Positions 1 through 13,512 of a stretch of DNA of 64,000 nucleotides are shown here, in pieces. Below the pieces are notes generated by a model. It was not told the origin of the DNA. It was given only the letters and a program-made list of their open reading frames with translations, and did not search any database. The stretch lies in the IMG/VR virus record IMGVR_UViG_3300008259_005066, positions 1 through 64,000 of that record; one strand, 5' to 3'. A program made the translations under genes and the position numbers. How positions within the stretch are numbered: position 1 is the first letter of the stretch; each line of letters starts with the position of its first letter.

Positions 1-603
1 TTCTGTGACACGGATATCAGTCCTATGATACTCGTCTGCCTTTCCTGATGGATCCACGTGCCAGGCATAGAACTTAGACCATGGATAATCTTGTTTGAGG
101 CTAAGAAAAGCATTTAAATTGGGCACAGAATCATCATACATGATGATCTTGTCGTAGTGTTCTTTGCCCAAGAGATGTTGTAGTATGATCTTTTTCTTTT
201 CTTCTGTGGCGGCTTTGATGTTCAAGTTACCAGCACGATACACATGCACTTTTGACATGTCAATGCCATACTGGCGGAATGTGTCCAGGAAAACTTCTCG
301 GTCATTGAAGTCCGAGCGGGCAGTAAGCATGATCACTTTGTTGCCCGTGGCGATGTCTTGTTTGAGTTGGCGGATCATGCCGGGTATGGGCCGGGCCTGT
401 GTGTAGAATTCGCGGGCATCACGGAAAGCACCAAAGTCAAACTCTTCACCGGGCTGTAAGTGATAGTGCGTGAAATCGTGACTGTTGAGTTGCTTCACGA
501 TCCGGCCATCTCGCACCACATTGACCTTGGTGTCTGTGTTGACCAGGGTATCGTCGATGTCAAAGATGACTAGTTTGGAATTAGCGAATTCTTGTGCTCT
601 CAT
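1..603 (-). CDS. HAD-superfamily phosphatase (3'-partial, runs off the window; missing from the ORF track)
   Basis: Manual translation from ATG at 603 is open to base 1: MRAQEFANSKLVIFDIDDTLV...MLTARS...IIMYDDS, i.e. HAD motif I (DxDxT), motif II (T) and motif IV (DD). ATGA overlap with the upstream gene. Confidence 0.85.
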   Translation of the reverse strand, partial: MRAQEFANSKLVIFDIDDTLVNTDTKVNVVRDGRIVKQLNSHDFTHYHLQPGEEFDFGAFRDAREFYTQARPIPGMIRQLKQDIATGNKVIMLTARSDFNDREVFLDTFRQYGIDMSKVHVYRAGNLNIKAATEEKKKIILQHLLGKEHYDKIIMYDDSVPNLNAFLSLKQDYPWSKFYAWHVDPSGKADEYHRTDIRVTE

Positions 604-998
604 ATCATCATCTCTGGTAATGTTTCCAAGTTGGCTTTAATCTTGGCAAAGTTCATCATATATCGGTTGACAAAGTTGGCATAGCCGGCAGGATCTCGGG
701 CTTCCCAATCTGCCAATCTTTCTTTCATTGCTGTGTATTCTTCATTAAATGCCACAGCATTGTCGCTTTTACTTTTCCAAAGCCGTTTGACTGTTTCTTC
801 TAGTTCTCGGGTGTTGGGGTTGTTGGGATAGTGTTTTTTACATATCACCCACAACATGGCAGCCGAGTTGATAATCTTGGTGATGTTCCGATCGGATTGA
901 GCCTGTGCCGATCCCAATGCCGCAGAGCCAGCCACGGCACCTGCACCACGCAAGAAGTCTCTGCGAGTGATTTCGACTAATAATTCTTGTGCTCTCAT
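600..998 (-). CDS. Hypothetical protein with twin-arginine (Tat) signal peptide
   Basis: MRAQELLVE-ITRRDFLRGAGAVAGSAALGSAQA matches S/T-R-R-x-F-L, then a hydrophobic stretch and an AxA site. Confidence 0.75.
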   Translation of the reverse strand: MRAQELLVEITRRDFLRGAGAVAGSAALGSAQAQSDRNITKIINSAAMLWVICKKHYPNNPNTRELEETVKRLWKSKSDNAVAFNEEYTAMKERLADWEARDPAGYANFVNRYMMNFAKIKANLETLPEMMI

Positions 999-1579
999 AG
1001 GCTGTAGGGGTCCATTATCACTAGATGTCCATCACTGCGGCGGCGAAGGTTCTCTATCTGGCTGAGATCCAATGGTGCCTGGCCGCCCAAGGCTTGTTCT
1101 AATTTCAGCGTAGTATTTACTAAACCCACGATGTCATCACGATCCAGTTCTTTAGGAGCAGGATTGTTCTTCATGAACTCCTGCACACGATCACGTCCGC
1201 GTGCCACTGCTGACATGAGATTTTCTAGATAGTCCAGCGTGGCTTCTTCGTTGGCCACATAGTCTAGATATTCCATCTCATACACAAAATATGTTTCTCC
1301 ATCTACTTCAAAATCACCCACGTTGTAAATCCTGGGAATATAAGGATCGTTCTGATTGTTGACGAAAAATTTCACGTAGTTTTTTACTATCTGTTCGCGC
1401 TCATCTTCACCTATGCCCAAGACTTTGAGTATGGTGTTTCTGGGACTCAACAAGGCTATCTGATCGCGTCCTTCGCCGGCCAACTGATAGCCGCGATCAA
1501 AAAAATAGTTTTGTATGCGGTCGCTCACTGATAACTCATCGGGAAAGTTTACTTCTGAGATAAATTCCTGAGATCGCAT
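995..1579 (-). CDS. Protein-kinase-like (PKL/APH fold) protein
   Basis: Gly loop GEGRDQIA, ILKV lysine, YEMEYL hinge, DLSQIEN catalytic-loop-like and VIMDP metal-binding-like motifs. The D-to-N spacing is one residue longer than canonical. Confidence 0.6.
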   Translation of the reverse strand: MRSQEFISEVNFPDELSVSDRIQNYFFDRGYQLAGEGRDQIALLSPRNTILKVLGIGEDEREQIVKNYVKFFVNNQNDPYIPRIYNVGDFEVDGETYFVYEMEYLDYVANEEATLDYLENLMSAVARGRDRVQEFMKNNPAPKELDRDDIVGLVNTTLKLEQALGGQAPLDLSQIENLRRRSDGHLVIMDPYSL

Positions 1580-4500
1580 TATCTCAACTCTGGAACGACT
1601 TCTACAGGATCATCAAATCTAGTGCGTTGGACCCATTGTTGTGCCACACGATTGGCATCGCCTTGACTGTTGCCTATGCCACTGAATGTGTAAACCACTT
1701 CTCCGGTATTGGCATTACGAACTTGCCACTGTCCTGAGAATTCGCCCTGTGTTGATGTGGCAACAGGTTCTCGATTGCGCCGCCAGGCTGGTGGCTGTTG
1801 GGGGTGTGCAGATATCTGTATGACATCTCGACCTTGCATTTGCAACGCATCTAGCACATTCTGTCTGGCTGCTTCGGCACTGGCAGCATCAATGTTCAAA
1901 GAATCACTGGTTACTGTTCCATTCCTGCGCTCATCCCACATCACACGATAGTGTCCGGCGTCTGATACTGCGCCTGCGGGTTGAGGCTCACCTATGCGGG
2001 CCTGTATCTGTTCACGATCTCGCTCATTGTCTGCGGCCACTGCCGGTGTGACCTTGGGTTCTTTGAGGCGTTTGGCCACTTGAGCACGTGGACTCAGTTT
2101 CTTTTCTGGCTCAGGAGTGTCATCGGGCCTGCGATATATCTCCCAATCGTCGGAGAGTCGATCCCCATACTCTGCCTGGACCTTTTGTTTGGCGCTGTCA
2201 AAATCTCTGGCTCTCACAGTGAGTATGATGTCACCGTAGGAATCCTTGACATCATACCAGGGTTGTTTCTTACGGATGTCCAAATTGCGCCATTCGGGTG
2301 TGTTGCCATACTTGTCCTGGGCTTTCATATAGGCAGTGTCATATTCATCAGCATAGAAAGAGTCGATCACTCCATCCGGACCAGACTTGCGCTGATCATA
2401 CACTTCCCACTCTTCTTGACCAGTGGTGGGTATCTCTTTCTGGAGCACAGCATTGGCCCACTGTTTCTTGAGTTCTTCTGGAGTTATGGTGCCAGCGGCA
2501 AATTGAGAAAATAACTTGAGACCGTCATCCTGTGCACCAGGTGAGATCAGTTTATAGAGTTTCTTGGCATACTCTCGACGTTCCAGGCTGGGGCTGCCTG
2601 CGATCTGCATGGCCCGAGCAAAACGCAACATGGTATTGCGGATGTCATCATATTCACCGCGACTCTCCATGCTCAAATAATCACCACCAGGGCTACGGAA
2701 CTCGATGTAGCCGTCCTGGATGTGTGCGGAAGTATACTTGCTGTCTCCCACACCGTTCTGCACATAACGAGCAGCCAGTTCAATGAGATTTTTCTGCACC
2801 AGTTCTAGCGCACCCATGGGATCAAATCGGGCTTCAGTCAAGGTGCCACGGCGGCGTGCCACTCGCATGCTGTTGCGTAGTTTTTCCATGGCCGATGCCG
2901 CATAGGTGTTGGAAGCACGACCAAACTTGTCTAACACATATTCGTCGCCCATGAACAGCACCAATTTGACATAGTCTACGTCACCGCCCACATAGGGTAT
3001 AGAGATGCCCATGTGCAAGCCGGTGGACGAGTTGGTGTAGGCATCGGCTTCTGAGTTACCCCACTCAATGACCTGTTTTAATTTTTCCAGGGTTTCTGGC
3101 AAGGGCAAGGGCGGAGACACGATCTCCAGGCCCATTTCATCATCACGATCATCGGGATCTAGGCTGCCGTCGGGTTCGATGATCCATAGACCGGGCCGGC
3201 GTGTGGTTGAGTGATAGCCTGAACTCACTCTCACTGGCATGTCAATGGCACGCTGTAAACTGTCACCAATATCGCTCCACTCACGGCTGCCAGTGCCAGA
3301 GGAACCGCCGCTCCAGTAGGGCCAGTCAAGGCTTTCTTCGTTGGCGATGTCAGTCATGTAACCATAGCGGTCACGGAGGAAGTCGCGCTCGTCAAACTCG
3401 CCGCCTTCTCGCGTCATGTCCCAATAATATTCGCGAGCCGCATCGTAATATTCGCCTTGGCTTTCAAACTCATTGGTTATTTCTTCTTCGAATGCTTCGT
3501 AGGCCGCATCGGATGCTTGCTTGAATTTTTGGTATAATTCGTTGGATTGTGCATATTCATCTTGATCTGAACTCCGGGTGAATCTTGGTGCGCTGTCGCC
3601 GGCTTTCATTATAGCGGGCACTGCCTCGTCACCAAACATTTCCTCGACCTTGTCTTGGATACGGCTTTCGCGTTCTGAGTCATCGTCCCAGACGTTGGTC
3701 TCCATGTAGTCACGCACTTGATCTTCGGCATTCTCGTCCCAACTCTCGCTGATCTGTTCATCCACCCATTCCGTATAGGCTTCCCACAGGCTTTCTCGTA
3801 GATTCCTGGCGCCTTGGCGACTCAAACCATAGCCATAGTCATCATTGGAGAAGAAGTCTATGACATGGTCGATGTCATCGGGCCGCTCATCGTAGTCGTA
3901 GTCAGGTTCTTGATCGTAGTCTTCATCTTCGTCACGGCGGGTATCACGGAAGATCATTTCTGCTTCAAAGCCAGCACGTATACCTTCGGCTTCAGGTGAT
4001 CGTGCCCAGGCTTCCAAGGCCCCGGGCGACATCTTGACTTCCATGAGATCTTCGTCTTCTTTGACTTCGATATTGACGAATCTTGGATTGCCAGTGCTCG
4101 ATGGTGTTTTTTTCTTTGGTCGGTCTTGTGGTCTTTGTCGTTTCTGGGCCTGCCCTTGATATGGATCTATTTTTTGTCGTGGGTCTGGCACGGCAGGAGT
4201 CACGGGATTGACTGCTTCAAACACTCCAGTCTCTTTGTATTCCTTCAAGGCATTGGCCAAGTTCTTGATCAACAGTGCAGGACGTCCTTGGCTGTCGGTC
4301 TGCAATCCCAACTTGTTGGCTTCCTTGCCTACCTGTCCAGGTCGGATGTCCACTGTGAGTGCTGTTTTGAAACGTGGATCTCGGGCCTGCTTCTTGGTGG
4401 GGATGTATCCTGCGGCATCTTCGGCCACTTTACCTTGTATTTTCTGTTGTAGACGATAGGTCTTGATGAATTCTTGTTCCGAGCGTGTCAAAGGACGACC

Positions 4501-6678
4501 TGTCGTGGCCTTGCCCATGACAAACTTGTAGTAATCTTCGCGATCCTTTTGGCTGCGACTCACAGGCGTCTGTATGGATTCTCTGCGCGGTGCAGGACCT
4601 TCTATGGCCACCATGGCACGGAATGTGTTGCCCATCTGGTCGGCTTCATAATCCACAACTTTCCAACCGCCGGGGCCCAGTGTGATAGGACCATGCTGTT
4701 GTTGTGCGCGGTTGATGGCATTTTCCAGGGCCTGTCGATAGGCTTCTTCTGCTGATGCAGCCGCGGCGTTTGACGCAACACGCTCACCTTGCGGTCTAGG
4801 GCCACCATAGATCAACTTGCCACCCACACGTATTTCTCTGCTGCCACGTGCCATGTCTCGGGCTATGCCCTTGAGTTCTTCTTCAGCACCTGCACGGGTG
4901 AATATGCCCGAGGGTTGATATATCTGCTTGCCTATCTGATAGGCCGTGCGCCCCACATCCTGTGCCTGTGCTGGCTGTCCCAGTGCGGCAGCGGCTGCCA
5001 AGGCACCAGTGGCCAGTGTTTTTCCTAGACCCTCGTCTACATTGTAGGTAGGATCGGTCTTGACTTTTCGCATGCCAGCGGGTTGCCGGGGATCCTTGGG
5101 ATCGATGTCAGTGACATCTAGGCCCGTGGCTTCAAGATCTTTGATAAACTTATGTTCAGTTTCTTCATCGCCAAACGAGATTATGGAACTGGGCGGACCT
5201 GCACCAAAGTCATGCTTGCCCAAGCCTTTCATGTTGGAGATATGCTGTCCCAGTTTATACCAGTCATACACATCGCTCACATCTACCCTCACAGTGCCTG
5301 CGGGCATGGTAGGAGGGAATTCTGGTCCTGGTGGAGTCTGATCACCATAGTGTGCTTCGATGTCATCGTCTTCACCGGTAGCACCAGACTGTGCGGGTGA
5401 AAACTCCGTGAGTTGTTCTTCCACTGTTTCTGCGCCAAAGAATTCTGGATAACGATTTTGGAAATGGCGCATAATTATGCCGGCCTTGGCATTGGCTTCA
5501 TTTTCGTAGGGACTGCCAGTGCGACCCGCTGTGTCAGGCATGTCTCGGCCCAAGCGTTCATGCTGTTTGTAATGTGTGAGTTCATGTGCCACGGTGCGCA
5601 GGATGTCCATGATGTGGCGACCGTGCGTGGCCACCTCGATCATTTTCTTGTCATCTACATAATGGCCCATTGAATGGATGTGCTTGGTAAATTTTTCACC
5701 TTGCAAGATGATGCGAGGCAGTTGATCTAGTTTGAGATAGTGCGCGGCAAAATGCACGAAGCGTCGCACCACTTTGTCTATGGGTATGCTCTTGGCTTGG
5801 ACTTTGATCTCTGTGTCTTCGCGCACACTTTCTCCGCCCCCATCACCACCACCGTCTGCGGCTTCGGCGTCGCCGGTCTGACCATAATAACCATAGCCTG
5901 GATAATAGTATCCACCAAAAGAACCGTAACGGAATTTCTTTTTGGATTTTTTCTTTTTCTTTCGGCGCTCAGCCAGGCTCAGTTTTGAATCTTCTAGGCT
6001 GGCACGATGATCAAACAATCGCTTGACCAAGCCCTGTGTGCGCAGGATCTTGTAGGCCAGATTCTCAGGTCCGAACTCGCCATGTTCATCCAATCCGGCC
6101 TGCCGATATCGTTTTATCACGTCAGTGAGATTGGTGACTGTTTGGAGATCATCGCTGGTCAGTGCAAGCTCAATCAGGTCTCTGAGTTTTTCGTATTTTG
6201 CTTGGGTTGATTTTTCGTCGAGATTGCCTTGGCGTCGCACGGGAATACGAGTCCAGTCGTCACGCACGATGGAATACTCACCAAGGCTGCGAACAGGCTT
6301 GCCTGCGTCTTGCACATAGAGCTCGACGTCATAGCCTCTGATTTTTATATCGTGTTGATCGTTGTATTGATATTTCTTTGCGTTGAACAGCTCTTGATAT
6401 ACTTGGTCGGGATTGAGCTTGCTGAAATCTACTAAGAGATGCAGATCTATGTCGGAATGGGGAGTATAGGTGTATGCGGCATTGGATCCACTCACAGTGA
6501 TATCTTCCACTGCGAGATCACTGATGCCCAGGAATTCGCGGAAATCATCGGCGATTTTGATCAGGGCCTCACGCACTTCGGGACGCATGCGATCGCCGTC
6601 CCAGAGTGCAGGGTTTAATTCAGTGTGAAACTTTACCGCGTCCGACAGGCGGTAACTGTCTAATTCATTGATGTCCAT
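1579..6678 (-). CDS. 1699-aa multidomain protein: nucleotidyltransferase + zincin (HExxH) + putative amidoligase + C-terminal repeats
   Basis: GS-x10-DIDLH (pol-beta NTase) in residues 60-125; AHELTH at 364-369; GFEAE...W-x-I-x-PDGSL...EIVSPPL...NSSTGLHM...IEFR (COOH-NH2 ligase family). Confidence 0.8.
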   Translation of the reverse strand: MDINELDSYRLSDAVKFHTELNPALWDGDRMRPEVREALIKIADDFREFLGISDLAVEDITVSGSNAAYTYTPHSDIDLHLLVDFSKLNPDQVYQELFNAKKYQYNDQHDIKIRGYDVELYVQDAGKPVRSLGEYSIVRDDWTRIPVRRQGNLDEKSTQAKYEKLRDLIELALTSDDLQTVTNLTDVIKRYRQAGLDEHGEFGPENLAYKILRTQGLVKRLFDHRASLEDSKLSLAERRKKKKKSKKKFRYGSFGGYYYPGYGYYGQTGDAEAADGGGDGGGESVREDTEIKVQAKSIPIDKVVRRFVHFAAHYLKLDQLPRIILQGEKFTKHIHSMGHYVDDKKMIEVATHGRHIMDILRTVAHELTHYKQHERLGRDMPDTAGRTGSPYENEANAKAGIIMRHFQNRYPEFFGAETVEEQLTEFSPAQSGATGEDDDIEAHYGDQTPPGPEFPPTMPAGTVRVDVSDVYDWYKLGQHISNMKGLGKHDFGAGPPSSIISFGDEETEHKFIKDLEATGLDVTDIDPKDPRQPAGMRKVKTDPTYNVDEGLGKTLATGALAAAAALGQPAQAQDVGRTAYQIGKQIYQPSGIFTRAGAEEELKGIARDMARGSREIRVGGKLIYGGPRPQGERVASNAAAASAEEAYRQALENAINRAQQQHGPITLGPGGWKVVDYEADQMGNTFRAMVAIEGPAPRRESIQTPVSRSQKDREDYYKFVMGKATTGRPLTRSEQEFIKTYRLQQKIQGKVAEDAAGYIPTKKQARDPRFKTALTVDIRPGQVGKEANKLGLQTDSQGRPALLIKNLANALKEYKETGVFEAVNPVTPAVPDPRQKIDPYQGQAQKRQRPQDRPKKKTPSSTGNPRFVNIEVKEDEDLMEVKMSPGALEAWARSPEAEGIRAGFEAEMIFRDTRRDEDEDYDQEPDYDYDERPDDIDHVIDFFSNDDYGYGLSRQGARNLRESLWEAYTEWVDEQISESWDENAEDQVRDYMETNVWDDDSERESRIQDKVEEMFGDEAVPAIMKAGDSAPRFTRSSDQDEYAQSNELYQKFKQASDAAYEAFEEEITNEFESQGEYYDAAREYYWDMTREGGEFDERDFLRDRYGYMTDIANEESLDWPYWSGGSSGTGSREWSDIGDSLQRAIDMPVRVSSGYHSTTRRPGLWIIEPDGSLDPDDRDDEMGLEIVSPPLPLPETLEKLKQVIEWGNSEADAYTNSSTGLHMGISIPYVGGDVDYVKLVLFMGDEYVLDKFGRASNTYAASAMEKLRNSMRVARRRGTLTEARFDPMGALELVQKNLIELAARYVQNGVGDSKYTSAHIQDGYIEFRSPGGDYLSMESRGEYDDIRNTMLRFARAMQIAGSPSLERREYAKKLYKLISPGAQDDGLKLFSQFAAGTITPEELKKQWANAVLQKEIPTTGQEEWEVYDQRKSGPDGVIDSFYADEYDTAYMKAQDKYGNTPEWRNLDIRKKQPWYDVKDSYGDIILTVRARDFDSAKQKVQAEYGDRLSDDWEIYRRPDDTPEPEKKLSPRAQVAKRLKEPKVTPAVAADNERDREQIQARIGEPQPAGAVSDAGHYRVMWDERRNGTVTSDSLNIDAASAEAARQNVLDALQMQGRDVIQISAHPQQPPAWRRNREPVATSTQGEFSGQWQVRNANTGEVVYTFSGIGNSQGDANRVAQQWVQRTRFDDPVEVVPELR

Positions 6679-10199: not shown

Positions 10200-10895
10200 T
10201 TATTTATCGCGTATGAGTTTGACTGTTTTCCTTGTGATACGAGGTAACAACAGGCTCAGCATAGTAACTATGCCCATGCCATCATGATCAATGAAAAAGT
10301 TTTCACTGACATAATAGTGTTTTTGATCCTGTTCAATAAACTGCGCCAGACCCGGTCCCAATCGTATGCTTTCTTGCTTGATCAAGAAGTCCACTAGATT
10401 GTGGCGTTGAGGTTCATCCAGACGCTGTGCCCGGAAATAGGACCGGAACTCGTGCTGGCTGTTCTGGATCCTCAGCGTGTCTCTGGGGCGATCCAACACA
10501 CTGCGTTTCACGCTCACTGCATGCACATAAGGCAACTGTTCTATGGTGCGGATCAGGCCCAGATCGCTGGTGTAAACATATCCCCAATCACCTGACACTG
10601 TGATTTTGTAATTCTGTTGTGCCTGCAGGAAATCCAACATGGCATGGCAATTGGCTCGCTGTTCTTCGGTGATCTGACCCCGGCGGCTGGCCCAAGATCC
10701 ACCAAAGTTCGGACTGCGTTGCCGCCAGTCATTGCGATGGTTGATCATGCGATCGATGCGGTCATGCTCCATCTCTCGCACACAACTCATCTCGTCCATG
10801 CGGAAAGCCAAACAATACTCATAGAGATCGAAATAAGATCTATCTCTACGATGTATTTTAATGGTCAAAGGGCTAGTCGACTTGTATGATACCAT
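10200..10895 (-). CDS. Hypothetical protein
   Basis: Start moved to MVSYKS to limit overlap with clpA; start is uncertain. Confidence 0.6.
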   Translation of the reverse strand: MVSYKSTSPLTIKIHRRDRSYFDLYEYCLAFRMDEMSCVREMEHDRIDRMINHRNDWRQRSPNFGGSWASRRGQITEEQRANCHAMLDFLQAQQNYKITVSGDWGYVYTSDLGLIRTIEQLPYVHAVSVKRSVLDRPRDTLRIQNSQHEFRSYFRAQRLDEPQRHNLVDFLIKQESIRLGPGLAQFIEQDQKHYYVSENFFIDHDGMGIVTMLSLLLPRITRKTVKLIRDK

Positions 10896-13082
10896 CGGCG
10901 TCCACGGTTCCTGTGCTGGGTATTGGGTTGAGATCGCTGAAAGCCACTGTGCCATCGCGATAGTCTGCTGTGATTTCGCAGTCCTGCAAGCGATCAAACA
11001 GGATCTTGCGGCTCAATGGCACGCGGATCAGTTCGTCGATTTTGCGACCCAACGGCCTCGCACCCATCTTGGGATCATAGCCAACGTCTGCTAGATGCTC
11101 CACCATGGCTTCTGTCAGCGTGAGTCTGATGTTGCGATCCACTAGACTGCGTTTGAGTTCGTCTACGAACTTGATGACCACTTTCTTGATACTCAGCGGA
11201 TCCAGTTTGTTGAATTTGCAGATGAGATCCAAGCGATTGCGCAGTTCCGGGCGGAAGTAATCTTTCACAGCGCGATCTTCTTCGCCGGTCTTCTCGAGGC
11301 TCTGGCCAAACCCGATTGTGTTATTTTCATTGTCTCGAGCACCTAGATTTGACGTCATGATGATGATGCAGTTCTTGACGTCCACGGTCTTGCCATTGCT
11401 TCCAGTGATGGTGCCTTCGTCCATCATCTGCAGGAAGATGTTGGCTATGTCTGGGTGGGCTTTTTCCACTTCATCGAACAACAGCACTGAGAATGGATGT
11501 TTAGAAAGATCATTGATCAGTTTGCCCCCGGCCAGTTGGCTGTCATCATAGCCCACATAGCCCGGAGGTGCTCCCAGCAGTGAACTCACGGTGTGTCGAT
11601 CTTGATATTCGCTCATGTCGTATCTCAACAGTTTCATGTCGAGATTGTCGGCCAACAGCCGTGCCAGTTCTGTTTTACCTGTGCCAGTGGGGCCCAGGAA
11701 AAGGAAACTGCCCACTGGCCTGCGACCTGATGCGATACCAGCGAAGTTCACATAGATACGTTCCAACACTTGATCCACCACATGATCCTGACCGTAAAGT
11801 TTTTGCTTGATGTTGCTGTCTAGTTCGGTCACTCGGGTGTTTACATCATTCTTCACACGTTCGGGTGGAATATTGGCCACACGGCCCACTTGATCCTGGA
11901 TCAAATCTGCGGTGATCACCACATCATCAAGATCTTTGATGCGTTCTCGGGCACAGGCCGCATCTACTAGATCTATGCTCTTGTCAGGATTTTTGCGATC
12001 AGTGATATAACGACTGGCCAGTTCCACTGCTTTGGTGATGGCATCTGCGTTGATTTTGACCCGATGGAATTCTTCCATGCGAGGTTGCAATCCTGTCAGT
12101 ATGCGTATAATGCGCGATCTTTTTCAAACGACTCATAGTATTCTTCCCAAGTGGTTGATGCTATGACTTTGAGCAAGCCCTTGGTTATGGCCGGCTTGAT
12201 CATGTTGGCAAAGTCTAGACTGGATCCAGACCCTGCACCAGCACCGCGCATGGTGTGCGCTTCATCTATGAACAGTATGACATTTTTCTTATGTTCCAAG
12301 GCCATGAGCACGGCCTTGAGTTTTTCTTCGAACTCGCCGCGATATTTGCTTCCTGCCAGCAATGAGCCAATCTCCAGGCTCCAGACTTCATGATCCTTTA
12401 GGAATTCTGGCACTGTGCCGTTGTATATCAGCGTGGCCAGGCCCTCGGCGATGGCAGTCTTGCCCACTCCGGGATCTCCTACCATGAGCACGTTTGACTT
12501 AAACTTTTTGGCCAATACCGTGATGATTTCATTGAGTTCTGTGGATCGCCCGATCAAGGGCTCCAGTTTATCCTCTCTCGCCCGCTGGCTGAAATTGATA
12601 CAGTGTTCGGTGAGGATTTCGTTGGCCTGATCATCACTGATCACTCCGTCCTTGGTAGTGTAGTTGGCTTGCCAAAATTCGATGAACTCTTTCTTTTCCA
12701 GCCCGTGCTTGAGGAAATAATAGTGTGCATGGCTGTTTGACTCGTTCATGATGGCCAACCATAGATCTATAGTGGTCACTTGCCTGCGGCCTGTGAACAA
12801 CACCTGGGTGAGCGCACGATTGAACACACGTTCCAATCCATTGGTTTTCTTGGGATCTTCGTCGCGATTCATACGCAGGCTGACCATGCTGTCGATATAA
12901 CTTTCAAGGTCTTGATCGAGATGATCCACAGGCGTGCCAAACTTGACGATGACCTGCGTGAAAGGCTGATGCCTTACCAAGGCCAAGGCCAGGTGTTCCA
13001 GCGTGACATATTCGTGTCGCTTTACGCGGGCCAGTTTTTGCGCCTGGGCTAATATTTGTTCAATTTCAGGATTCTGTTGCAT
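10873..13082 (-). pseudogene. clpA: ClpA-like AAA+ chaperone split by a frameshifting deletion near 12105
   Basis: Clp N-domain, D1 Walker A GDPGVGKT and Walker B LFIDEAH, D2 GPTGTGKT, LLFDEVEKAH and GARPL. KDRAL joins IRILTGL in another frame; the RRF-containing segment is absent. Confidence 0.9.
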
Positions 13083-13512
13083 TCTGTTCCTTGGCTCGAT
13101 CATGCATGGTTATTCCTTGTAGATGATCCAACTCGTGTTGGAAACATCTGGCTTCAAGTCCCGAAAGATCTGCTTCGACCCAATCACCGAAATGATTTTG
13201 GTATCTCGCCCTGATCGCATCGGGTCTTTTAAGTATACATGAGTCTCCGGGAAAACTCAAGCATCCTTCCTCAAATTCGGCAAACACATCACTGCTAGAC
13301 ACTATGACAGGATTAAAGCACGCCCGATCGTGTCCGTCAACGCTCATCACAAACAATCGTTTGGAAAGGCCAATCTGTGGAGCTGCCAATCCTATGCCAT
13401 TTTGCAAGCGCATCAACCCAAACATCTGGGTGGCCAGATCATGATTGCGGACAGGATACTGGAAATCTACAGGCTTGGCTTGATTGTGTAAAACCCTGCG
13501 TGTCAACTTCAT
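13066..13512 (-). CDS. def: Peptide deformylase
   Basis: GIGLAAPQIG, EGCLS and QHELDHL motifs; ATG follows TAAATA. Confidence 0.95.
   Translation of the reverse strand: MKLTRRVLHNQAKPVDFQYPVRNHDLATQMFGLMRLQNGIGLAAPQIGLSKRLFVMSVDGHDRACFNPVIVSSSDVFAEFEEGCLSFPGDSCILKRPDAIRARYQNHFGDWVEADLSGLEARCFQHELDHLQGITMHDRAKEQNATES

Follow-up and report, generated by a model that had tools for sequence, protein, structure and literature searches.

Introduction

In phage T4, the internal head proteins (IPI-III and Alt) carry a capsid targeting sequence (CTS) that is cut off by the prohead protease gp21, and these internal proteins are delivered into the next host (PMC9026906). Processing in T4 depends on CTS residues 8 and 10 (PMC9026906), and the prohead proteases of T4, phiKZ and SPN3US all cut C-terminal to Glu (PMC5694885). 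Polyvalent proteins of phages and conjugative elements join two or more unrelated effector-type domains in one polypeptide, and their processing into separate units is predicted so that each can reach its own target (Iyer et al. 2017, PMC5512222). Signal peptides for export, in turn, include those of the Sec type (cut by signal peptidase I), located at the N-terminus of the exported chain, and those of the twin-arginine (Tat) type. In animal viruses, a protease cut inside a polyprotein can create the N-terminus that carries an export signal, as when alphavirus capsid self-cleavage exposes the signal of the next protein.

Here we examine a signal-peptide-like stretch that lies in the middle of a giant protein of a T4-like jumbo phage. 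The window we analysed is the first 64,000 nucleotides of IMG/VR record IMGVR_UViG_3300008259_005066, which is 209.5 kb long. The original prediction, made from the sequence alone, was that window positions 4963-5031 encode a cryptic signal peptide near residue 550 with the same AQA-Q ending as the Tat protein. It further held that the stretch makes sense as a signal only if cleavage frees it, that it independently supports a polyprotein model, and that it suggests a second exported effector.

This locus shares some features with each of the systems above. As in T4, the genome encodes a gp21-type protease and a gp23-type capsid protein, four ORFs start with leaders like that of T4 IPII and IPIII (MKTYQEFIAE), and the putative cuts are after Glu with an aliphatic P3. 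However, many cassettes sit in one chain here, the proposed cuts are internal, and the new N-terminus would be an export signal, of which we found no mention for T4 in the papers searched. As in polyvalent proteins, the chain strings together a nucleotidyltransferase-like (NTase-like) domain, a zincin-like peptidase and an amidoligase. Its embedded metallopeptidase, however, matches PF18818 only below threshold, its cassette borders point to a Glu-specific protease rather than to self-cleavage by the zincin domain, and the description of polyvalent proteins (PMC5512222) contains no occurrence of 'signal peptide' or 'transmembrane'. The logic recalls the animal-virus polyproteins, but the two are not homologous: that process is co-translational and occurs at the endoplasmic reticulum of eukaryotic cells, whereas here it would occur after translation in a bacteriophage, possibly with a capsid passage in between.

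Results

A signal-peptide-like leader lies inside a giant ORF

The observation held at the exact coordinates. Window 4963-5031 (minus strand) encodes residues 550-572, GLGKTLATGALAAAAALGQPAQA, of a 1,699-aa ORF (P0001, window 1579-6678, minus strand), with NVDE preceding the stretch and QD following it. The stretch has the three parts of a signal peptide. The n-region, G550-K553 (window 5020-5031), contains one Lys, and no Asp or Glu occurs between residues 550 and 573. The h-region, T554-G567 (window 4978-5019), comprises 14 uncharged residues with a mean Kyte-Doolittle value of 1.56 and contains the most hydrophobic 11- and 15-residue windows of the protein. The c-region, Q568-A572 (window 4963-4977), has Pro at -4 and Ala at -3 and -1, giving Q-P-A-Q-A/Q-D (a slash marks a putative cut). 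These features, together with the length of 23 residues and the neutral or acidic first residues after the site, match a Sec-type signal peptide, whose hydrophobic core has about 7-15 residues. However, the stretch is not at the N-terminus of the ORF product but lies 549 residues from its start, and its core is far less hydrophobic than the ordinary Sec and lipoprotein signals elsewhere in this genome.

The Tat protein of the original prediction exists as a 132-aa ORF at window 600-998 (minus strand), MRAQELLVEITRRDFLRGAGAVAGSAALGSAQA/QS, for which Pfam TAT_signal scores 28.8 bits against a cut-off of 22.7. Residues 1-9 (window 972-998) are a T4 CTS-like leader, MRAQELLVE, and residues 10-33 (window 900-971) are a Tat signal ending AQA/Q. 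A search for relatives of this protein in viral contigs found only identical copies, while a word-based protein search found five relatives; in the family, the leader is nearly invariant while the mature part falls to 39% identity. Both the Tat protein and the internal stretch end AQA-Q, and both share the weakly hydrophobic Gly/Ala-rich core of Tat signals. However, the likeness is short, of low complexity and modest: the Tat ORF is the best non-self Smith-Waterman match in the six-frame proteome of the record, but it scores 41 against 38 for the next (mean 17.4, sd 4.2). The internal stretch has GLGK where the twin-arginine motif S/T-R-R-x-F-L-K (PF10518) should be, and it gets no TAT_signal hit even at E up to 5.

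The giant ORF is built of cassettes bordered by Glu

BLAST alignment borders in the giant ORF cluster just after a Glu, at SVRE287/D, TVEE421/Q, NVDE549/G, PRRE700/S and KVAE753/D. All parts described here are on the minus strand. Residues 1-236 (window 5971-6678) form an NTase-like domain, with phrog_36119 at E 2.9e-42 over residues 15-235 and Pfam NTP_transf_2 at 17.3 bits, below the cut-off; this domain is a stand-alone gene in Maribacter and Synechococcus phages. Residues 237-287 (window 5818-5970) read as a linker with a poly-Lys run, then a Gly/Tyr-rich stretch, then GDGGGESVRE, and alignment borders fall at 283-288. Residues 288-421 (window 5416-5817) form a zincin-like domain with an HExxH motif (HELTH at residue 365, read from the sequence) that ends TVEE421; the only Pfam hits are sub-threshold, Peptidase_M78 at E 0.0069 and MPTase-PolyVal PF18818 at E 0.014 (15.9 bits against 27.5). 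Residues 446-549 (window 5032-5343) form a conserved module of about 100 aa, PPGPEF...DPTYNVDE, which in other phages is followed by unrelated cassettes. It matches 251 IMG/VR stretches; in the 80 loci examined, the copies are 67-93% identical, leaving aside the two records identical to the window, and all 80 end in V-x-E.

The leader follows this module directly and heads a 151-residue cassette (residues 550-700). Its cargo, residues 573-700 (window 4579-4962), was modelled by AlphaFold2 as two helices followed by a beta-alpha-beta domain (616-693, window 4600-4833), and it ends RRE700, whereas relatives end V-[KR]-E. Next come residues 701-753 (window 4420-4578), the SIQTPV...KVAE cassette, which in other loci follows NVDE directly, and residues 754 to about 830 (window 4189-4419), the GYIPTKKQARDPRF cassette, which follows the leader-bearing cassettes in relatives. 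Residues 1137-1226 (window 3001-3270) are an Amidoligase_2 core (PF12224, 29.6 bits against a cut-off of 22) inside the large C-terminal region. PHROGs also finds phrog_33777 in the giant ORF.

Pfam and PHROGs gave nothing for residues 445-549, 550-700 or 701-870, a nucleotide search of the phage collection with the giant gene found no match, and a PDB sequence search and an ESM Atlas feature search gave nothing. Foldseek on the first model gave no match at E up to 0.001. VIA-align and Atlas searches with the domain model gave weak, convergent matches to Lpp20, FlgT_N and dodecin (Z 5.5-5.9, TM 0.53-0.57), which lie below the noise mark of Z 8. The nearest folds are periplasmic proteins, but we treat these matches as a lead only.

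The leader moves with its cassette and keeps its position after Glu

Conservation of the Glu-signal junction had been set as a test beforehand, and the junction is conserved. Homologous cassettes sit at residues 536, 595 and 762 of other polyproteins, and in the homologues P0004, P0005 and P0008. The upstream sequences are unrelated, but in every context found the homologous leader follows [LIV]-[DE]-E/G. To ask whether this could arise by chance, we examined 65 distinct related polyprotein ORFs (62,178 residues). Every one of the 14 uncharged hydrophobic runs of 12 or more residues starts 1-5 residues after E[GD], whereas 4.2% of all positions do, and 13 of the 14 follow [LIV]-x-E-[GD], whereas 1.0% of positions do. 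These runs belong to related cassettes and so are not 14 independent events, but they have 13 different upstream contexts.

The three-part design is kept while the residues drift. In P0004, P0005 and P0008 and in the related polyprotein loci L004, L032 and L005, the basic residue, a 13-15-residue uncharged core and A-x-[AS] are retained (AQA, AKA, AKS and, in P0008, PPAKA), while the stretch just after the putative cut varies in length. The twin arginine is absent here and in all homologues of this cassette.

Related leaders also precede other cargoes. Locus L058 has LEE/GWKEKLAAAGAAGAMALGGY, which shares AGAMALG with L032 and L005, follows a linker similar to that of residues 237-287, and stands in front of a GH19 hydrolase (48.3 bits), an enzyme that acts on the cell wall. 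Another set of relatives, with Cys-type leaders, lacks the beta domain, and the beta domain folds alone in the model. AlphaFold2 models residues 547-565 as a helix (pLDDT 70-82), yet the leader's reuse indicates that it is not part of one fold.

In related proteins, the same position holds Tat-type signals. Locus L057 has VLE/DLSRRGFLGG...AQA followed by GH19, with no in-frame start codon in the 14 codons before the motif, although its TAT_signal score is weak (13.1 bits). Locus L021 scores 21.9 bits for TAT_signal at residues 215-235. The stand-alone protein P0010 carries AAACVAGTPGCATTEP, the core of the Cys-type leaders of related cassettes, behind SRRDFMK at a true N-terminus (22.7 bits). 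For the Cys-type leaders, a lipobox reading would fit TSGC in L017 but not TPGC in the others under the PROSITE PS51257 pattern.

No stand-alone homologue of this cassette with an N-terminal signal was found in 5.8 billion or 1.84 billion proteins: a search among proteins of 78-247 aa returned none, and a profile search of 1.84 billion representatives returned only 7 proteins, with the cassette internal in all of them. A free-living secreted ancestor could therefore not be shown for this subfamily; it was shown only for the Cys-type leader, through P0010.

The genome encodes a prohead protease of a Glu-cutting family

Peptidase_S77 (PF03420) scores 95.5 bits against a cut-off of 27 at 190636-191055 of the genome (G000), in the protease at 190498-191121, beside a Gp23-type capsid gene (332 bits) and scaffold-like genes. 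V547-D548-E549 (window 5032-5040, minus strand) would form P3-P1 of a site cut between E549 and G550, with Glu at P1 and an aliphatic residue at P3. The cassette's C-terminal border in this phage is R-R-E, however, without an aliphatic P3. A complex prediction of the S77 protease with residues 528-567 scored 0.00 and gave no answer, which is evidence neither for nor against.

The four ORFs with T4-like leaders start MR[AS][QR]E[FL][ILV]xE, and two of them lie directly downstream of the giant gene: the Tat ORF and a 194-aa ORF at window 995-1579 (minus strand), which is immediately downstream, starts MRSQEFISE and has a weak, kinase-like phrog_15752 match. The giant protein's own N-terminus (MDINELDSY) does not match this pattern, so its route into the prohead is unexplained, and the neighbouring genes are not structural genes.

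Discussion

The interpretation given in the original prediction is partly supported. Comparison with related sequences supports three parts of it: the giant ORF is built of cassettes whose borders lie just after a Glu, the signal-like stretch sits exactly at the start of one cassette and moves with it, and the same kind of leader occurs internally with a twin-arginine motif, in front of a periplasm-acting GH19 hydrolase, and at a true N-terminus.

The reading we favour, with a probability of about 0.5, is that residues 550-572 are an export-type signal that cannot work where it sits in the primary product and becomes N-terminal only when the chain is cut after Glu549. That the 1,699-aa chain is made in the cytoplasm follows directly from the ORF; the later steps, namely cleavage and the enzyme responsible, packaging, delivery and export, are all inferred, as is any role as an effector. 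In this view, the chain is cut after Glu at V-D-E549/G550 and R-R-E700/S701, most likely by the gp21-type prohead protease acting inside the prohead, with the chain's own zincin-like domain as the alternative. The freed fragment, which would start with GLGK followed by a 14-residue Ala/Gly/Leu core and QPAQA, would travel with the DNA into the next host, as T4 internal proteins do. There the leader would engage the host export machinery, with Sec more likely than Tat because the twin arginine is absent, and signal peptidase I would cut A572/Q573 and release a 128-residue protein with a predicted Lpp20/FlgT_N-like fold into the periplasm. An immediate action of this cargo on the envelope, such as exclusion of other phages, is a guess. 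The only moderately hydrophobic core argues against this reading, as does the invariance of the relatives' Cys-type leader core, AAAC[IV]AGTPGCATT, which is more conserved than signal peptides usually are and hints at a sequence-specific role.

The main rival, which is possible but less likely, is that the leader is a membrane-insertion or anchoring helix of an ejected head protein. The cassette would be freed in the head and leave through the tail, and its Ala/Gly-rich helix would insert into the host inner membrane, from the periplasmic side or as a SAR-like (signal-anchor-release) tether, and help to form or anchor the entry channel or hold its cargo at the membrane, without Sec or Tat export or signal-peptidase cleavage. 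Small-residue-rich helices suit tight packing in membranes, and a leader of the same type precedes a cell-wall hydrolase in L058. The T7 internal core protein gp16 combines a muralytic domain with membrane insertion, and SAR endolysins have Gly/Ala-rich, weakly hydrophobic N-terminal segments. The invariant Cys-type core fits a specific structural role, and the junction and protease evidence fits this reading equally well. However, the uncharged run of 14 residues is too short to span a bilayer as a helix, whereas a SAR segment has about 20 residues and is joined to a muralytic enzyme; the cargo here is not muralytic, although the L058 relative comes closer. In addition, A-x-A with Pro at -4 to -6 is kept across diverged homologues, which an anchor would not need, and leaders in the same position carry the RRxFL motif, which is read only from the cytoplasmic side.

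Somewhat less likely still, the leader could be a leftover or merely structural element, with the cassette descended from a once stand-alone exported protein that was fused in frame into the polyprotein and the former signal surviving as a flexible hydrophobic linker or helix, or as a docking element inside the capsid, with no targeting role today. The absence of the RR motif and the modelled helix at residues 547-565 are consistent with this, and loci L014 and L018 illustrate such fusions, showing the same GH19 gene once as a stand-alone ORF and once inside a longer open frame. On the other hand, the three-part design, including A-x-A, is kept at 51-58% overall identity and even in P0008 at E 3e-4, and the leader keeps its position right after the Glu junction and is reused with unrelated cargoes, which would not be expected of a decaying relic.

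We rejected internal translation initiation at M537 (MRKVKTDPTYNVDEGLGK...), which would give a 1,163-aa product with a long n-region and an ordinary N-terminal signal: this in-frame ATG lies 13 codons upstream of G550 with no start codon in the 12 codons between, but it is absent in L004, L032 and L005, the only purine-rich stretch upstream lies about 16 nt away, too far to serve as a ribosome-binding site, and the downstream 1,100 residues include a cytoplasm-type amidoligase region that would have to be exported too. A chance low-complexity Ala-rich run, to which the marginal likeness to the Tat leader and a slightly raised local GC content might point, is very unlikely given the position rule in 14 of 14 runs, the conserved design and the reuse with other cargoes.

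It is tempting to speculate further, although we consider it doubtful on present evidence, that a group of T4-like jumbo phages packs export-tagged proteins into the capsid as polyproteins or as CTS-led small proteins. The prohead protease would cut after Glu and thereby expose Sec-, Tat- or lipoprotein-type signals, and after ejection the host's own export machinery would carry these pre-made proteins, cell-wall hydrolases and Lpp20-like proteins among them, into the periplasm within moments of infection, before any phage gene is expressed.

On the practical side, the rule of [LIV]-x-E/G plus leader gives a simple way to split the giant ORFs of uncultured jumbo phages into functional pieces, and it flags which pieces are likely to be periplasmic. 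Phage proteins that travel in the head are thought to act in the cytoplasm of the next host. A class of head-delivered or polyprotein-derived pieces that carry their own export signals would be a bacterial-virus counterpart of the protease-exposed signal sequences of animal-virus polyproteins, and it would add a route by which a phage can alter the host envelope at once, for example by excluding rival phages, remodelling the cell wall or changing receptors.

Our analysis placed the segment in the first 64 kb of a 209.5-kb IMG/VR virus record with a CheckV completeness of 60%; a 315.8-kb record carries the same locus. It lies on the minus strand within an ORF at window 1579-6678 that encodes a protein of 1,699 residues (P0001). 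Residues 550-572, GLGKTLATGALAAAAALGQPAQA, map exactly to window 4963-5031, with NVDE before and QD after. The stretch contains one Lys and no acidic residue, and its uncharged 14-residue core, T554-G567, has a mean Kyte-Doolittle hydrophobicity of 1.56 and gives the most hydrophobic 11- and 15-residue windows of the whole protein. Pro is found at -4 and Ala at -3 and -1. The original prediction had described a signal-like segment at this position with the same AQA-Q ending as a Tat protein. That protein is the 132-residue ORF at window 600-998 (minus strand), MRAQELLVEITRRDFLRGAGAVAGSAALGSAQA/QS (a slash marks a border or putative cut throughout), for which Pfam TAT_signal scores 28.8 bits against a cut-off of 22.7. 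The observation is therefore correct as written, although the likeness of the segment to the Tat leader is only marginally above the next best match.

The giant protein is a chain of cassettes joined after Glu

Pfam and PHROGs recognize only two parts of P0001, an N-terminal nucleotidyltransferase-like domain (phrog_36119, E 2.9e-42) and an Amidoligase_2 core at residues 1137-1226. A zincin-like HExxH domain (HELTH at residue 365) gets only sub-threshold hits, to Peptidase_M78 and to the MPTase-PolyVal family. The homologue of the amidoligase region in Agrobacterium phage Atu_ph07 (locus L090; AUZ94978.1, MF403008.1 155929-157431) lies two genes from the T4-like portal gene, a weak hint that the domain is associated with the head.

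To examine the organization of the chain, we searched IMG/VR with residues 440-800 and found 251 stretches. These share a module of about 100 residues (446-549, window 5032-5343, minus strand; PPGPEF..VDVSDVYDWYKLGQHISN..DPTYNVxE), which is 67-93% identical in the 80 loci examined (numbered with an L prefix) when the two records identical to the window are left aside. It ends in V-x-E in all 80 loci, usually as DPTYNV-x-E, and after that Glu the sequences become unrelated between phages. The module has no Pfam, PHROG, PDB or Atlas match, and it also occurs as a stand-alone protein of about 130 residues in loci L067 and L078. It could be a head-core docking domain or a recombination handle.

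BLAST alignment borders along P0001 cluster at SVRE287/D, TVEE421/Q, NVDE549/G, PRRE700/S and KVAE753/D. The chain is thus modular, and every mapped module border follows a Glu. Residues 237-287 (window 5818-5970, minus strand) form a recurring linker, also seen at residues of about 185-224 in locus L058, with a poly-Lys/Arg run, then a Gly/Tyr-rich stretch (YGSFGGYYYPGYGYYG here, RVYGGYAFYP in L058), then GDGGG and [LV]-x-E. This linker may be an exposed, protease-accessible spacer.

The signal-like leader belongs to one recurring cassette

The cassette at residues 550-700 recurs in loci L004 (from residue 536), L005 (595) and L032 (762), and in the database proteins P0004, P0005 and P0008. 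While the upstream sequences are unrelated, the junction is the same every time: NVDE/GLGK, DLDE/GLGK, ELEE/GIGR, DLEE/GIGK, QLDE/GIGK and NIDE/GRLGK. At 51-70% identity, and in P0008 at E 3e-4, the basic residue, a 13-15-residue uncharged core and A-x-[AS] are kept, with AQA, AKA, AKS and PPAKA as variants. In contrast, the residues themselves drift, and the stretch just after the putative cut varies in length. In relatives the cassette ends V-[KR]-E, whereas here it ends R-R-E. GC content is slightly raised over the leader cassette (0.56-0.57 at window 4500-5100, against about 0.50 for the gene and 0.48 for the genome), but because a similar rise occurs at 3150-3449, this is probably just Ala/Gly-rich coding.

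We then listed every uncharged run of at least 12 residues with a mean hydrophobicity of at least 1.0 in the 65 distinct polyprotein ORFs (62,178 residues). There are 14 such runs, and all start 1-5 residues after E[GD], against a background of 4.2% of positions. Thirteen follow [LIV]-x-E-[GD], against a background of 1.0%. The runs belong to related cassettes and so are not independent, but their upstream contexts differ in 13 cases.

Related leaders precede other cargoes and are tied to export signals

An alignment of all leader-bearing cassettes shows two flavors on one homologous scaffold: the A-x-A type, as here, and a Cys type, AAAC[IV]AGT[PS]GC[AS][ST]T. The Cys-type cassettes lack the beta domain of the window's cassette, so the leader is not an integral helix of that fold. 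That domain also folds alone in AlphaFold2, with pLDDT 86-91 over its core and pTM 0.60. In L058 (5866-7182), a leader of the same family, LEE/GWKEKLAAAGAAGAMALGGY, shares AGAMALG with L032 and L005 and precedes a Gln/Pro-rich linker and a GH19 domain (PF00182, 48.3 bits), an enzyme whose substrate is in the cell wall.

A scan for RR-x-[FL] motifs followed by an uncharged run found further internal cases. Locus L057 (11945-12982) has VLE/DLSRRGFLGG...VAQA/K followed by GH19, with no in-frame start codon in the 14 codons before the motif, although its TAT_signal score is weak at 13.1 bits. Locus L021 has SLSE/IDRRGFLKG...AKA/Q, with TAT_signal at 21.9 bits; here a GTG eight codons upstream leaves a separate start possible. 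Locus L014 (9429-11090) has DLEE/MNRRGFLG, also followed by GH19. In locus L018 (11260-11886) the same GH19 protein is a stand-alone gene, MRALEFITE/IDRRGFLGA...AQA/R; L014 and L018 look like the fused and unfused states of the same gene. GH19 (chitinase or lysozyme-like) domains occur behind Tat-type or Lys-type leaders, standing alone in one of these four loci and lying inside longer open frames in the others.

A profile of the Cys-type cassettes found P0010, a stand-alone 100-residue protein, MKLHEILEE/TSRRDFMKGLGAAACVAGTPGCATTEP (TAT_signal 22.7 bits). This is the same core as the internal Cys-type leader of locus L010, but at a true N-terminus behind a twin-arginine motif, SRRDFMK. The Cys-type core is invariant across otherwise diverged cassettes (internal in L010, L013, L015, L017-L019, L048 and L063, N-terminal in P0010), which suggests a sequence-specific role beyond plain targeting. 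It may be a Tat-lipoprotein signal with an unusual lipobox, or a two-Cys motif with another role.

These data tie the internal leaders to real export signals, and they argue against the segment being an integral helix of a folded domain, which had been named beforehand as the result that would count against the signal reading. We base this on the portability of the leader rather than on the AlphaFold2 model, which shows residues 547-565 as a helix at pLDDT 70-82 but with low global confidence (pTM 0.43).

A candidate protease and CTS-like leaders in the same phage

The record encodes a Peptidase_S77 (T4 gp21-type) protein at 95.5 bits, beside a Gp23-type capsid gene (332 bits) and scaffold-like genes. 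This T4-like head gene block lies outside the window, at 186000-194300 of G000 (phage sequence extending beyond the window), and contains the Gp23-type capsid gene (188165-189361), scaffold-like genes, the S77 protease (190498-191121) and a very acidic ORF (191140-192003). The capsid protein starts MSQELLE/S...EALME/GLNG, which offers possible sites for a cut after Glu. Prohead proteases of T4, phiKZ and SPN3US all cut C-terminal to Glu (PMC5694885). A complex prediction of the protease with the junction gave no answer.

In T4, a 10-residue capsid targeting sequence (CTS) brings internal proteins into the prohead, and its processing depends on residues 8 and 10 (PMC9026906). T4 IPII and IPIII, which we read from NC_000866, both start MKTYQEFIAE/A. 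Four ORFs of this phage start in a very similar style, MR[AS][QR]E[FL][ILV]xE: MRAQELLVE/IT in the Tat protein (window 600-998, minus strand), MRSQEFISE/VN (window 995-1579, minus strand), and MRAREFVAE/Q and (M)RAREFIVE/S (G000 151121-151525 and 151522-151893, both on the minus strand). The first two lie directly downstream of the giant gene. Stand-alone copies of the conserved module also start this way, for example MRINEIIKE/N in L067 and L078. In the Tat-protein family the leader MRAQE[LF][LI]xE/ITRRDFLRGAGA... is nearly invariant, while the mature part falls to 39% identity. Because its CTS-like leader is followed at once by a Pfam-confirmed Tat signal, the Tat protein could either be exported in the producing cell or be packed into heads. 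The giant protein's own N-terminus, however, is not CTS-like, and its neighboring genes are not structural: they include a HAD-like protein, a cytidylyltransferase-like protein and a ClpA/ClpB-like ATPase that appears split into two adjacent same-strand ORFs (window 10873-12090 and 12096-13103, minus strand), one with Clp_N plus a first AAA domain and the other with AAA_lid_9, AAA_2 and ClpB_D2-small.

Discussion

The original prediction had read the segment as a signal that makes sense only if cleavage frees it, as independent support for a polyprotein and as a hint of a second exported effector; our comparisons support this reading in part. Translation of one long chain follows from the ORF, and the comparative pattern is clear, but every later step of the most likely mechanism is inferred from sequence alone: cleavage after Glu at the cassette borders, release of a 151-residue fragment with the leader at its N-terminus, packaging and delivery into the next host with the DNA, export, and a signal-peptidase cut at A572/Q573. 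The prohead protease is the best candidate for the first cut because P1 is always Glu, while the embedded zincin-like domain is the alternative that the polyvalent-protein literature proposes (PMC5512222). Given that the twin arginine is missing here, Sec seems more likely than Tat for this cassette, although the core is much less hydrophobic than this genome's ordinary Sec and lipoprotein signals.

The predicted beta-alpha-beta domain of the cargo gives weak but convergent matches to periplasmic proteins: an 'LPHT ring' chain (Z 5.9), Lpp20 (Z 5.9), SIMPL-like and BP26 proteins (Z 5.5 and 5.3), RcsF (Z 4.8), and the Atlas clusters FlgT_N and LPP20 (TM 0.53-0.57). As all of these lie below the tool's noise mark and dodecin scores similarly, we treat them as a lead only.

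The main alternative is that the leader is a membrane-insertion or tethering helix of an ejected protein, of which T7 gp16 and SAR endolysins are examples. While this would fit the GH19 link and the small-residue-rich helix, it explains neither the conserved A-x-A nor the RR variants, and 14 residues cannot span a bilayer. It is also possible that the leader is a vestigial signal left by an in-frame gene fusion, but this fits poorly with the conserved design and the reuse with unrelated cargoes. Internal initiation at M537 is unlikely, since M537 is not conserved, we saw no usable ribosome-binding site, and no other start codon lies within 12 codons. Chance is excluded by the position rule.

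The protein fits the description of a phage polyvalent protein, and the phage fits the T4 pattern of CTS-led, protease-processed internal proteins. The polyvalent-protein paper (PMC5512222) has no occurrence of 'signal peptide' or 'transmembrane', and full-text searches found no report of an export signal in such a position. The nearest parallel in logic is the protease-exposed signal sequence of animal-virus polyproteins. What neither the polyvalent-protein nor the T4 account contains is an export signal placed directly behind the cut. In this phage group, a putative site cut after Glu followed by an export signal is a repeated unit, which occurs at N-termini behind a 9-residue leader and internally in polyproteins.
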